From positions 124,001-188,000 of the IMG/VR virus record IMGVR_UViG_3300042305_001773: DNA of 64,000 nt. The stretch is one strand, 5' to 3'. This document shows, piece by piece, positions 46,305 to 52,611 of the stretch. Positions within the stretch are counted from its first letter, which is position 1, and every line of letters begins with the position of its first letter. The notes beneath the pieces were generated by a model. The model saw nothing but the letters and a program-made list of their open reading frames with translations, was not told where the DNA came from and made no database searches. The translations under genes were made by a program, and so were the position numbers.

Positions 46305-47543
46305 TTACGTGCAGTTAACCTGAGCGTTTGGTTTCTTTTGGACTGTGATCGTGGCGTTGTCGATGAGAATATTAATGCCTGCGCCGCCAATCATATTTAC
46401 GTTTGTACCGCCTACACCGTTGATAGTTGAAATAAGCTCACAACACGCAGGTCCGCCGCTTAAAAATTTATCAACCCACATAATCTCGGTTGGCATTTTT
46501 TCTTCTAACGTTTCCCAGCGCGACGCTGGCCACTCTTCGGCGGGGACACCCACTGGCGGCGGACCGTAAAACAGATAACTAAGAGTTGCGTTTGTTTGAA
46601 CCCACGTTTTATTGTTCCACGTGTAGTAAATCGCGTTTTTGTGCTGGCAAAGCACTGGCGGTAATGGGCCGCAGTTTGGCGACGGCGGCGTGGGCTCTGA
46701 TTCCCAGCCATACGTGTCGCCGGGCTTAGCGCCGGCACAGCCCGGAAGCGTTGAACTATCCGGCGTGTCCATAGTATCGATGTATTGCGTGGGCACAATC
46801 TTTGTTTCGCCGGCCTCGCCGTCAAACAACGGCAACTCGCCGCTGTTTGCGCACAGATCGTCGCCGTTTGAGCCCGCTCCCGCACCTTTTGCTGCCGTGA
46901 CTGTTATCTCGTTTGAGCGGTCAGTTTGTGTAATTAAGCAGTTATACCCTTCTTTGAGTCGAATGTCGCCCTTCATGCAGCGTGAATTCAACACAATTGC
47001 GCGGTTGTCGTTTGTCCCAGTCTGGTCGCACGGCGGGACGCGTACGCGGTCGTAGTTGCCGACACTGATTGAGCGTAGGTATGCTTTGTTTAAGTTTTGA
47101 ATGCGGCCCGGCTCAACCTGATAGTCGTTCGGCTGTAACGCCCATACACCGTTAACGGCAGCGTCATTAAACGCTGCTGTCAGCGCTTCCAACGGGCCAG
47201 TCACAAGAAAGCCAGACCAGATCGGCTCTTCGGCGCACGGGTTTTCCGTGTCGACTGCGGACTCACTGTGTTCAAGTGCCCACTCGCCGGTATCGTGTCG
47301 AGTAAAAGAGACTGTAGCCGGCGACGCGTTTGTGCTAAACACAAACTCAAATAAGCTGCCTACTTTTTTTACAGCTGACAGCCAAATTGTATGTTCGCTT
47401 TCGTCATACCGGGCGTCGAGGCCCATAATGAACCCTGCGTCCAGTACCGCGCTTGTGGGTAGCGGCGGAAGGGTGGCTGGTTTGTTGTAGATAAACGGAT
47501 ACGCGCGGTATTCGTTGTCGTTGTAAAATCCGGGACGAGGCAT
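46305..47543 (-). CDS. Cys-rich tail/baseplate paralogue 5
   Basis: NEYRAYPF...ISTINGV. Confidence 0.7.
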
Positions 47544-48319
47544 TAGACAACACTCCTGCCGACAGTATCAACAACAATTGTCTCGCCGTCAGCGTAAATT
47601 CGCAACACAGCGTCGGCGACTGCTTGATTTGTTGCTGTAAACGTGAAATTACCAAAGTCGTCGGGACCGCAACCGTTGATTGTTTTTAGATATCGCTTGT
47701 TCGGAAAATCGTCGCTTTGTGGTTCGCAGAGGAACCGGCGAAACAGCGGCACGCCCACGATGTCGACACGAATGACGCCCGGCCCGTCTTGGCGCAGCAC
47801 AACACCCTGATCGCCGACTAACCAGATATCGCCGGTCAGGAATTGTTTTGTCTCAGGCCGCACGGCTCGAACGCCCGGCTCGTTTGCGGGAATAGAGACG
47901 CTGCTTACAAATTCTGTCTGATCGATTTCAAACGTATACGTGCCGGGGCCCCAGCCAGAAAAGCGCGCAAGCCCCGTAGTTGTCGAGAGCAGCATTCCGG
48001 CTGGGCGACCGTATTGATCCGCAAACAGCAGTACGCCGTCTGCCGGCGGACTCAGCGGATTGTACGATGCCGACACGCGTGTGCTCAGCTCTTCATCGCC
48101 TACGTTTATTGTGACGCTTTGTGGCGCCACGACGATCGAAGATATGTAAACACGTTGATACCCACCAATAATGAAAAACGACGCGTCAATAAACGTGTCT
48201 GGCGCGATTGAAATGTTTTCTGTAGTTTCGCTTTGCAGCCCGGCCGAGTCTGCAAACGGATACCGCGACGCTTCTTGCTCGTCGCGGAACTCTGGAAATA
48301 GAATTCGTGCGCCTGACAT
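47543..48319 (-). CDS. tail/baseplate paralogue 4
   Basis: EASRYPF...LKTINGCGPDDFGN. Confidence 0.7.
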   Translation of the reverse strand: MSGARILFPEFRDEQEASRYPFADSAGLQSETTENISIAPDTFIDASFFIIGGYQRVYISSIVVAPQSVTINVGDEELSTRVSASYNPLSPPADGVLLFADQYGRPAGMLLSTTTGLARFSGWGPGTYTFEIDQTEFVSSVSIPANEPGVRAVRPETKQFLTGDIWLVGDQGVVLRQDGPGVIRVDIVGVPLFRRFLCEPQSDDFPNKRYLKTINGCGPDDFGNFTFTATNQAVADAVLRIYADGETIVVDTVGRSVV

Positions 48320-50049
48320 TATTGCACCACAAACTTGTTAAAAAACGTAGACGCTTGATTAGTAAATAAACCAATAGACCCGGTCACTTCGCCCGGGTTG
48401 TTGATACTGGTTGTGCCGCTCACCGGATGTGAGCCATTCAGCTCGGAGACGGAAAAAGAAACAGACAAGCTGCTTCCGTTCAACGACAGGCTTGCGTACA
48501 TCCGGTACCACATGTTTACTTTTGCGCTGTAATTGACTGACAACTCGTCGACGAATATGTCACCGTTGTACCGCAGTACACGCACCTTGCCGCGCGTCCC
48601 GTCGACGATGACGACAACATATCTTGTTACAACTTGCCCCAGTTCCAGCGTCTGCATGTAGTTCAACACAAGGCCGCCGTTTCTGGCTGCTCCGTTTGTG
48701 CCTAGTTTGAACTCGGTCATGATCGAGCGATTCAGCGCCCAGTCAGTTGCGCAGTTTTTAAGCACGGCGATATTCGTACCGCCGATGCCGATAGACAGAT
48801 ATGTGCCGTGATTTGTTAATGCCGCGCCAAGCTCCGGGTCAAACTCGCCCGGTGCGCAGTTTCCGCAAATCGGCGGGGCAAGTGTTTCTTGCGGCGAGAA
48901 CGAACCCGCTTTAGTAACAAAATACGCGTTCGGCTGACACGAGCCAAAATCAACGCAAAGCGGCAGCGGCATGCACGCGTAGTCAGGCGGATCTAGCGTC
49001 TCATCTACAACCAGATCAATTGCCGCTGTCGGATCTGGCCAGCAATATTCGTCAATTACGATATCTGTCTCGACGTAATTTGAACCATCCCATCGATACA
49101 CCTTATTGGTATCAAACGCTAAATACAGTCGTTCAAGTTCGCCCGCCGGTGGAAACGACGCTTGGTTTGCGTACACCGTAATGTTTTCGCCAGTGGGTTC
49201 GCAGCATAGGTCTTTAAACGCTTGCGGCGGTTTGGGTTTGTTAGCGTCACACACCGCGCCTAAACCAATGTCTGTCACTATGTCTGCGCCGCCGCAGTTT
49301 TCAAAGTTCACGGCGGTAAAACCGTCGAATACAATGTCGATATTTCCGTCGCAATCCGGCGCCACGCCGTTGATTGTTTCAATCGGTGTTTTGGGGCACG
49401 TGCCGCTTTCGGGTCGTTGCGCGCACGGCCCTAAGAACGTCGCAAGCGGGTTATAGTCGCCAGTAACAAGCGCGCTGTCTAGGCGAAAGACAATCGCCGG
49501 ATAATCGACAGCGTCGTATTGAATCGTTTCGTATTTTGCCGTAACGGGTGACGTACCAATAAGGTTCACTACCCCCTGTAGCGCCGTGCCAAGATTAATT
49601 TTGCCAATTGTGGGGATAGGTAGCGGGCGATACGGGCGCGCGTTTCTCGGTTGCACAAGTGTTTGTCGTGCTGCGCTGTATCGGCCGACAAATGGCGTAT
49701 CTACACCGGGGCCGAACACCACCCACCCAGAGACGCCAGACGTCATAGCGGTCACAGGATAATTTACGTATGGCGCGACAGGTTGCGGAACTGACACGGC
49801 GCACACGGTCTGCCCGCTTGAATCAATCTCTGTCGCCGCGCCGAATAAGATCGTGACAATACCGGCTGATACCGTCATCCCCTGAACGTATAAATACTCG
49901 CCCAGCGTTGAAGGAAAACGGATATGGCAATCAACGAGCACGTCTTCGCGAATAAACGCGCCACGGTCGTCGACGCCCGTTGAAATATCGTCAAGCGGGT
50001 ACCGTCGTGTGGACTGCAGGTTGTACCAGTTTTGATTGCGAATAGACAT
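48319..50049 (-). CDS. tail/baseplate paralogue 3 with a C-terminal concanavalin/LamG-like beta domain
   Basis: QSTRRYPL...IETINGVAPDCDGN; C-term beta-rich WYRM...GSIGLF...FNKFVV. Confidence 0.7.
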   Translation of the reverse strand: MSIRNQNWYNLQSTRRYPLDDISTGVDDRGAFIREDVLVDCHIRFPSTLGEYLYVQGMTVSAGIVTILFGAATEIDSSGQTVCAVSVPQPVAPYVNYPVTAMTSGVSGWVVFGPGVDTPFVGRYSAARQTLVQPRNARPYRPLPIPTIGKINLGTALQGVVNLIGTSPVTAKYETIQYDAVDYPAIVFRLDSALVTGDYNPLATFLGPCAQRPESGTCPKTPIETINGVAPDCDGNIDIVFDGFTAVNFENCGGADIVTDIGLGAVCDANKPKPPQAFKDLCCEPTGENITVYANQASFPPAGELERLYLAFDTNKVYRWDGSNYVETDIVIDEYCWPDPTAAIDLVVDETLDPPDYACMPLPLCVDFGSCQPNAYFVTKAGSFSPQETLAPPICGNCAPGEFDPELGAALTNHGTYLSIGIGGTNIAVLKNCATDWALNRSIMTEFKLGTNGAARNGGLVLNYMQTLELGQVVTRYVVVIVDGTRGKVRVLRYNGDIFVDELSVNYSAKVNMWYRMYASLSLNGSSLSVSFSVSELNGSHPVSGTTSINNPGEVTGSIGLFTNQASTFFNKFVVQ

Positions 50050-51663: not shown

Positions 51664-51666
51664 GTG

Positions 51667-52611
51667 TCACCCCGACGCTGAGCAGCCCGAGTCGCCGAGC
51701 TGGCTCCCCAGTACGACCAGACTCATCTGTGTTACTTCAGAACCGAGCCGCGTAATAAAGTTTTGCAACGTTGTCACGCCGTCGCCAAACCGGTTGATTT
51801 GATTGACAATAGCGTCCAGCTCCGTGCAGCCGCAGCAAGGTTGCGCGCACGTGTCAGAAAACTTTAAACCGTTGCTCATCGGCGTGATTTGAATGCAATC
51901 GTCTGGAGCAAGAATAAAATTACCGTCTGTGCTGCACACGCCGTTGATACACCGAATACACGATCCAATTTCTGGTGTTTCGCAGTAGCACTCTTCGTTT
52001 AAGTTTGTACCCGAGATCGCGTCAAAAACGATTTCAGTTTCCGTGGCAAATGACACAGCGGTGATGCGCACGTTGTTTCCAGCGACAAGCGTTACGTCGC
52101 CGTAAATAGGCGCGCTCATTTCGCCGTTGTTTGATATGCGCAGCCGCGTGACCGCGCGCAGCATCGGGCGGATCGTATCCGGCTCTAGCTCGCCGGCTGC
52201 AAATGTAAACTCGTACAAACCCGGCGGCATTTGATCAATCTCATCAAGCGTGCCGAGTACGACCCGCCCGACACAGTCATCAAAATCGTCTAAGCCGCCG
52301 AGCGCGTACGACCGATTAGGCTGGTAATTACTTCGGACAATGTTCGCCGCCGCCACGTCAACAGCTGTGCCGTTGTTGTCGTATCCGATAGTGATATTGA
52401 AACCGGTCGGGGCTATTAACAGGCTTTTGATAAAAAAACGATTGGGAGCAAACGCCAGCCCGGAATGAATTGGCAGATACAGCGCGACGATAAAACTATC
52501 GGGCAGTCTGACCGTGCCAGTCGGGTCTGTTTTGGTGGCGCGCTCGGTTAGCGGGTACGACCGCTGCGAGTTGTGATTGAGCCACTGTAGATTCCAGTTT
52601 CCAATCGGCAT
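51667..52611 (-). CDS. Cys-rich tail/baseplate paralogue 1
   Basis: NSQRSYPL...IRCINGVCSTDGNF...CAQPCCGCTEL. Confidence 0.7.
   Translation of the reverse strand: MPIGNWNLQWLNHNSQRSYPLTERATKTDPTGTVRLPDSFIVALYLPIHSGLAFAPNRFFIKSLLIAPTGFNITIGYDNNGTAVDVAAANIVRSNYQPNRSYALGGLDDFDDCVGRVVLGTLDEIDQMPPGLYEFTFAAGELEPDTIRPMLRAVTRLRISNNGEMSAPIYGDVTLVAGNNVRITAVSFATETEIVFDAISGTNLNEECYCETPEIGSCIRCINGVCSTDGNFILAPDDCIQITPMSNGLKFSDTCAQPCCGCTELDAIVNQINRFGDGVTTLQNFITRLGSEVTQMSLVVLGSQLGDSGCSASG

Follow-up and report, generated by a model that had tools for sequence, protein, structure and literature searches.

The DNA examined here is a 64,000-nucleotide (nt) stretch, referred to as the window, which corresponds to bases 124001-188000 of the 205,044-bp IMG/VR record IMGVR_UViG_3300042305_001773; positions are given in window coordinates. 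Between 46305 and 52611, on the minus strand, the window holds five consecutive open reading frames (ORFs), which we named A, B, C, D, and E, and each of which carries an RxYP[LF]-like motif near its N terminus (motif 1) and an INGV-like motif farther on (motif 2). The array constitutes a genuine and ancient set of five paralogues from a large unannotated phage tail family, the role in the tail being assigned by synteny. The genes are closely packed: A/B and B/C are separated by 3 nt, C/D and D/E share 1-nt TAATG overlaps, and the start codon of the long fiber gene that follows (ATG 46303) lies 2 nt past the stop codon of E, which suggests a single translationally coupled operon. The five genes, with their sizes in amino acids (aa), predicted parts, and motifs, are as follows.

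51667-52611, minus strand: gene A, 314 aa; predicted arm and beta-sandwich at residues 1-150, beta-rich neck at 150-257, PCCGC, and a coiled-coil helix of ~45 residues
52549-52572, minus strand: motif 1 of A, NSQRSYPL (residues 14-21)
52072-52101, minus strand: GDVTLVAGNN of A
51916-51948, minus strand: motif 2 of A, INGVCSTDGNF (residues 222-232)
51826-51840, minus strand: PCCGC of A (residues 258-262)
50053-51663, minus strand: gene B, 536 aa; core at residues ~11-300, PCCGC at 302-306, a helical stretch, and a distal domain of ~160 aa
51577-51600, minus strand: motif 1 of B, QSGLDYPL (residues 22-29)
50878-50910, minus strand: motif 2 of B, INGVTGADGDF (residues 252-262)
48319-50049, minus strand: gene C, 576 aa; core at residues 1-290, a Y-x-W-D-G hairpin at 290-327, and a C-terminal domain of ~180 aa
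49993-50016, minus strand: motif 1 of C, QSTRRYPL (residues 12-19)
49339-49374, minus strand: motif 2 of C, INGVAPDCDGNI (residues 226-237)
47543-48319, minus strand: gene D, 258 aa; the minimal member, consisting of the core only
48254-48277, minus strand: motif 1 of D, QEASRYPF (residues 15-22)
47645-47680, minus strand: motif 2 of D, INGCGPDDFGNF (residues 214-225)
46305-47543, minus strand: gene E, 412 aa; core with an insertion of ~115 aa (residues ~240-355) before INGVGG, and a short cap
47493-47516, minus strand: motif 1 of E, NEYRAYPF (residues 10-17)
46941-46970, minus strand: 10-residue stretch of E
46398-46424, minus strand: variant of motif 2 in E, INGVGGTNV (residues 374-382)

Conserved motifs of the array

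An earlier note on this DNA had reported five adjacent, closely spaced genes with both motifs and had pointed to PCCGC in two of them; both observations hold, with the strings as quoted, E carrying the variant of motif 2 and A and B carrying PCCGC. Among the 1,549 six-frame ORFs of at least 60 aa in the whole genome, the pattern of motif 1 occurs in five, which are the five array genes, each time near the N terminus, and the pattern of motif 2 occurs in four, again array genes only. A hidden Markov model (HMM) of the shared core picks out exactly the same five ORFs and none besides, and a chance origin of the motifs was rejected on the basis of this genome-wide scan.

A third shared element, GD(V/I)xLxxGxN, sits between the two motifs. 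When 45 sequences spanning the five groups were merged into one alignment, columns P20, C210, and N223 (A numbering) proved invariant, and Y19, G171, I222, and G224 reached a conservation of at least 90%; since invariant or near-invariant columns fall in both motifs, the motifs singled out from the sequence at the outset are the most conserved positions of the superfamily. The first 20 residues form the best-conserved stretch within A (0.97), C (0.93), E (0.90), and D (0.80), a pattern typical of a specific protein-protein contact.

Homology of the five genes

Pairwise BLASTP among the five proteins gave a clear match for A-B alone (3.7e-10), and profiles built from orthologues were therefore used. 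Compared by hhalign, six pairs scored between 81.9 and 98.7% probability (A-B, 98.7%; A-D, 98.3%; A-C, 96.7%; B-E, 92.5%; C-D, 82.3%; A-E, 81.9%), and the remaining four (B-C, B-D, C-E, and D-E) were weak when taken singly. When each group was compared with a profile of the other four, the probabilities rose to 99.9% for A, 98.0% for B, 97.5% for C, 97.5% for D, and 96.6% for E, against no more than 2.4% for the control genes next to the array, namely, the baseplate wedge gene (J) and three genes named U1, U2, and U3; kinship of any of these neighbors with the five was thereby rejected. The profile alignments are collinear across ~260 residues and hold both motifs in register. Judged from these profiles, the five genes are true paralogues of one family.

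Age and spread of the family

A scan of viral contigs yielded 24 related loci, in which C is 27 to 96% identical to that of the window. The order J-U3-U2-U1-A-B-C-D-E-fiber is kept in all 24, even in the most distant (27 to 42% identity). In a tree of the shared core, every orthogroup lies on one side of a branch, with Shimodaira-Hasegawa-like approximate likelihood ratio test (SH-aLRT) support of 99 to 100 for B, C, D, and E; as the orthogroups are separate clades, the duplications predate the sampled radiation. The five genes are thus the divergent paralogues that the earlier note had taken them for, the all-against-all profile comparison that it had called for did not return the lack of pairwise similarity that would speak against kinship, and the ancient duplication that it had proposed is borne out by the separate clades and the constant gene order.

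A profile search of 1.84 billion cluster representatives recovered 4,925 clusters, counted at 50% identity, at an E value of ≤1e-3, and 3,465 at ≤1e-10. The best 150 of the 4,925 could each be assigned cleanly to a single group (101 to A, 23 to B, 12 to C, 5 to D, and 9 to E); among these 150, D-type relatives are 255 to 264 aa long, A-type relatives almost always ~313 aa, and B-type relatives 488 to 1221 aa. A is 62 to 94% identical across the clade, and every one of the 459 A homologues found is named hypothetical. The five-gene layout also occurs in two further lineages, with proteins of 310, 1135 or 1221, 597 or 599, 255, and 344 or 335 aa, and in one lineage, which seems to lack the B and C slots, there are apparently three members only (931, 256, and 447 aa). 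Metagenome runs of lake water and freshwater, drawn from more than 20 studies, contain DNA nearly identical to 46305-52611, and the clade is one of uncultured freshwater contractile-tailed phages of ~200 kb. Homologues were also seen misbinned into Sphingorhabdus and Betaproteobacteria metagenome-assembled genomes, which is weak evidence on the host.

Predicted structure and oligomeric state of A

A first AlphaFold2 (AF2) model of A, built from 30 close sequences, was poor (predicted local distance difference test [pLDDT] score, 62), and the fold searches made with it were meaningless; a model from 100 diverse A-type sequences reached a pLDDT of 86.4 and a predicted template modeling (pTM) score of 0.60. 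This model was built without Met1 (51667-52608, minus strand), and its residue numbers, like those of the trimer model described below, are the true numbers minus one. The arm at its N terminus includes a short helix and is followed by a beta-sandwich extending to residue ~150, beta hairpins to ~255, and a helix at 261-305. Motif 1 sits in the arm, which is confidently modeled (pLDDT of 91 to 98 for residues 11-30).

When three copies of A were modeled together, the interaction prediction score from aligned errors (ipSAE) was 0.48 (0.46, 0.48, and 0.58 in individual runs) versus 0.00 for the best control, the runs having at least 76% of contacts in common and a partner pLDDT of at least 72; the interface predicted template modeling score (ipTM*) was 0.32 to 0.38. 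Of 30 solved homo-pairs, 20 reached the mark of 0.48, as did 1 of 23 single chains; this calibration was made with two copies and alignments of its own and thus holds just roughly for the A trimer. The confident interface is made up of residues 150-256 and the a/d heptad positions of the helix, with the N-domain outside. F196, I219, and I240 (true numbering) each contact their own counterparts in the other copies, which places these residues on a three-fold axis. In the predicted trimer, the adjacent chain contributes G230-NFIL and G248-LKF as pairing strands for I222-N-G-V225, and GDVTLVAGNN pairs with TEIVFD; motif 2 and the third motif would thus be interlocking strands of a trimeric neck, which gives a structural reason for their conservation. 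A is accordingly predicted to form a homotrimer held together by an interlocked beta neck and a coiled coil.

The prediction bears on a proposal of the earlier note, according to which the duplication produced a hetero-oligomeric, fiber-branching hub. In a hub of this type, either paralogues would mix within a single oligomer, as mixed trimers, or five different trimers would be locked together in a fixed complex, with the long fiber branching from it. Such a hub would be in line with several observations: (i) the genes appear to be translationally coupled and are strictly co-inherited 1:1; (ii) the trimer-core residues are common to all of the paralogues; (iii) each paralogue has its own highly conserved N-terminal arm, which would suit docking on a partner specific to each; and (iv) a precedent exists in T4, whose gp10-gp11-gp12 are paralogous trimers that interlock and are translated from a single polycistronic mRNA (PMC3004832). 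On the other hand, A alone passes the controls as a homotrimer, the number five is not divisible by three, three members seem to suffice in one lineage, and the ends that follow the neck differ in length from 35 to ~330 residues; these unequal ends, together with the restriction of PCCGC and the helix to A and B, make register-matched mixed trimers awkward. By analogy, an interlocking of different trimers is plausible, and mixed trimers are less likely on account of the very different ends; the hub as a whole we hold to be rather unlikely. Equally doubtful, in our estimate, is a more specific arrangement, in which five trimers would interlock via their paralogue-specific N-terminal arms and sandwiches into a fixed hetero-complex per wedge, a baseplate periphery with a fold that has no solved relative, and would anchor a disulfide- or metal-stabilized, cysteine-rich collagen fiber, all this in one of the most diverse clades of lake jumbo phages.

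Search for known relatives

The shared core gave no match in Pfam-A, PHROGs v4, or NCBIfam 20, even when 100 diverse A-type members were included. The N-terminal family of T4 gp9/gp10 (PF07880), which was named by a language-model feature row at 0.65 and by a shape row at a template modeling (TM) score of 0.26, gave no Pfam match at an E value of ≤0.1 with the five proteins and the 100 A-type members. Profile searches of the PDB with A, B, C, D, the merged core, U3, and U1 returned nothing but a coiled-coil likeness of the A helix. Direct comparison of the core profile with single sequences of T4 gp8, 9, 10, 11, 12, and wac gave hhalign probabilities of 0.1 to 0.3% and HMM scores of no more than 5 bits.

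Megablast and tblastn searches of 50,697 phage records found no match for the region, A, or J, and for C they found a hairpin of ~40 residues only. Judged by the tail sheath, the nearest cultured phages are Vibrio phage D181 and Salmonella phage Arash (26 to 27% identity), and both lack the family in a profile search for which the positive control recovered all five genes.

Fold searches with the A model, a monomer, found no PDB chain above a Z score of 5.6 and no phage baseplate chain, the best matches being generic (C2-like sandwiches with Z scores of ≤5.4 and single helices at ~5.5). Searches of PDB by Foldseek, by VIA (wide and second look), of AFDB clusters, and of the ESM Atlas likewise returned only family members or generic C2-like and helix matches. 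The AFDB clusters matched by the A model were uncharacterized proteins of 302, 565, 258, and 399 aa (E values of 1e-29, 3e-14, 1e-12, and 5e-8, respectively), lengths that correspond to the A, B or C, D, and E types, respectively; this assignment, made by length, fits a fold common to the family. With no match by sequence or by fold in Pfam, PHROGs, NCBIfam, or PDB, the family is undescribed, as had been suspected from the sequence.

Variable ends of the paralogues

The regions beyond the shared core differ from one paralogue to the next. In the three-member lineage, the coiled coil of an A-type relative is followed by Calx-beta-like repeats that span ~600 residues. The distal domain of B gave a weak Ig-like/DUF11-like lead by language-model features (0.85), and B-type relatives (488 to 1221 aa) have RCC1, Gly_rich_2, or cadherin-like ends. 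For the C-terminal domain of C, language-model features pointed to the concanavalin A (ConA)-like lectin/glucanase clan at 0.94 to 0.96, with nine of the ten best named matches in that clan.

The hairpin of C (residues 290-327; 48970-49180) follows the pattern LYxAxDTxxxYRWDGxxYVE and recurs in the insertion of E (~46500-46850) and, in other lineages, elsewhere in E (loci L008/L009, near 12590-12710). It is the sole part of the five proteins that matches PHROGs or cultured phages by tblastn (C residues 288-327), the matches in Gordonia, Flavobacterium, and Nitrincola phages being to a minor tail protein or "peptidase," and it has the appearance of a small, mobile tail-fiber module. The ~115-aa insertion of E itself is confined to the window and three of the related loci (L003, L004, and L020); in other lineages an insertion lies at a different site.

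The family is rich in cysteine, with conserved cysteines all along A, B, C, and E; the content is 12 residues in A, 18 in B, 16 in C, 11 in E, and just 2 in D. PCCGC stands exactly at the base of the predicted coiled coil of A, and the motif recalls the interchain cystine knots of collagens or, alternatively, a metal site.

Taken by themselves, these ends might indicate five independent, alternative receptor-binding fibers that attach via a common N-terminal module and serve host recognition only, with no structural role. A conserved N terminus followed by a variable C terminus is the usual pattern of receptor-binding proteins, the distal domains are adhesin-like (RCC1, cadherin-like, Calx-like, and lectin-like), and tailspike proteins (TSP) 1 to 4 of the Ackermannviridae (PMC8825819) offer a precedent. 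This explanation is difficult to reconcile, however, with the lack of a distal domain in D, which keeps a constant length of 255 to 264 aa, with the high identity and nearly constant length of A across the clade, and with orthogroups that are kept in single copy and neither swapped nor lost, a behavior that fits structural parts better. We regard it as improbable.

Genomic setting

The genes on either side of the array, in window coordinates, are as follows.

56875-58596, minus strand: J, baseplate wedge protein (Baseplate_J/gp6-like), 573 aa; Pfam PF04865 at 1.6e-11 and PHROG 6, baseplate wedge subunit, at 1.2e-18
55151-56872, minus strand: U3, family without assignment, 573 aa, between J and the array
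54509-55141, minus strand: U2, family without assignment, 210 aa, between J and the array
52625-54484, minus strand: U1, family without assignment, 619 aa, between J and the array
41786-46303, minus strand: long fiber gene, 1505 aa from ATG 46303, delimited by ORF, start, and junction inspection
40884-41783, minus strand: second collagen-like fiber protein, 299 aa; PHROG tail-fiber families at up to 1.8e-56, driven by collagen repeats

With a Baseplate_J gene upstream and a collagen-like fiber downstream, the placement between baseplate wedge and long fiber that had been read from the sequence alone is correct. U1, U2, and U3 are strongly conserved and syntenic across all related loci, and none of them matches an entry in Pfam, PHROGs, NCBIfam, or PDB; in this clade, the baseplate periphery as a whole lacks annotation. 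A tail sheath gene is present in the 205-kb genome, which makes this a contractile-tailed phage.

ATG 46303 is most likely the true start of the long fiber gene; TTG 46390, the start given by the mechanical listing, lies in overlap with E and is probably incorrect. The fiber contains at least nine to ten repeats of 60 to 61 aa, each with a four-cysteine pattern of the PGDCxxPxQCEF type, and 69 cysteines in total. Beyond the repeats, residues 1084-1179 and 1182-1439 form collagen-like G-X-Y tracts that include GDKGDK runs. Long plus-strand ORFs opposite the collagen-like genes (41002-41859, 42312-43148, and others) mirror G+C-rich triplet repeats and are improbable as genes. A sigma-70-like gene (59566-60420, minus strand; PHROG 351 at 8e-09) immediately precedes the baseplate genes on their upstream side, and its position is kept in distant relatives, with weak Sigma70_r3 matches in two such loci.

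As fiber chaperones are often encoded beside fibers in tail modules, the five could also be nonvirion proteins of the tail module that act as assembly chaperones or scaffolds for the cysteine-rich collagen fiber. The large size of the paralogues (258 to 576 aa, with relatives of up to 1221 aa), their adhesin-like ends, and the predicted coiled-coil trimer are unlike chaperones, and we consider this explanation very improbable.

Proposed role of the five proteins

The reading that we favor, and hold to be moderately probable, is that the array encodes five distinct homotrimeric proteins of the baseplate edge, which serve as adaptors and short receptor-binding fibers. Each would be composed of (i) an N-terminal arm with RxYP[LF], packed on a beta-sandwich of ~120 residues; (ii) a beta-rich neck of ~100 residues, with strands that include GD(V/I)xLxxGxN and (I/L)NG(V/C)...G(N/D)(F/I); and (iii) a paralogue-specific end, which would be PCCGC and a coiled coil in A, PCCGC, a helix, and an exchangeable distal domain in B, the hairpin and a lectin-like domain in C, and a short cap with lineage-specific insertions in E, D having none. 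Most likely, each paralogue forms its own homotrimer, in which the neck strands would interlock around the three-fold axis, thus explaining motif 2, while the three N-domains would splay outward as docking modules of which motif 1 is a part. Expressed from a single operon with translational coupling, the five trimers would be produced in fixed proportion, and their place would be the baseplate periphery, downstream of the wedge. Because of their constant length and high conservation, A and D would be structural adaptors, and B, C, and E, because of their variable ends, short fibers or receptor-binding proteins that stand next to, or carry, the long cysteine-rich collagen-like fiber.

Several points weigh against this assignment: (i) the placement of the five proteins in the virion, at the baseplate, is deduced from synteny with the wedge and fiber genes in the 24 loci; (ii) the fold and trimer predictions cover paralogue A, as three copies, and the trimer score is moderate; (iii) a trimer core common to all of the paralogues would make mixed trimers possible; (iv) the strong 1:1 conservation is unusual for receptor-binding proteins; (v) HMM and PDB searches gave no support for an Ig-like end in B; and (vi) the ConA-like lead for C found no Pfam match among 22 orthologues, no PDB profile match, and no Pfam annotation of homologues.

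The family is found widely in lake and freshwater phages, yet it is missing from Pfam, PHROGs, NCBIfam, and PDB. Its definition could allow annotators to recognize the adsorption apparatus of widespread uncultured freshwater jumbo phages, and it would mark the genes with exchangeable distal domains, B above all, as natural handles for host prediction.

Comparison with known systems

The N-domain of the A model (residues ~36-126) superposes on C2-type beta-sandwiches at Z scores of 4 to 5.4; values below 8 reflect merely a common sandwich arrangement, with no sequence relation and no functional inference to be drawn.

Closer in organization are TSP1-4 of the Ackermannviridae phage CBA120, which form a branched complex on the baseplate (PMC8825819). 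Both systems have several tandem genes with shared N-terminal attachment modules and differing distal domains. The TSP N termini, however, are gp10-like XD domains, none of which was detected in the array; phages exchange TSP receptor modules with one another, whereas the array consists of stable 1:1 orthologues; and A and D of the array usually lack a distal receptor domain.

In its proposed function, the array recalls gp9-12 of T4, among which gp10, gp11, and gp12 are encoded by consecutive, cotranscribed genes and are held to descend from a single primordial fold (PMC3004832). The array resembles gp10-12 in its consecutive genes, which would likewise form one transcription unit, in its position downstream of wedge genes, and in the trimers that its products would form, and T4 also has one member that is an adaptor and another that is a short fiber. 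The two systems differ in that no relation in sequence or fold to the array family was detected and in that the array has five members whose homology is still visible in sequence; we take the array to be analogous, and not related, to T4 gp10-12. It would thus provide a sequence-tractable case of a complex baseplate periphery that has grown by gene duplication, a process that in T4 is visible in structures only.

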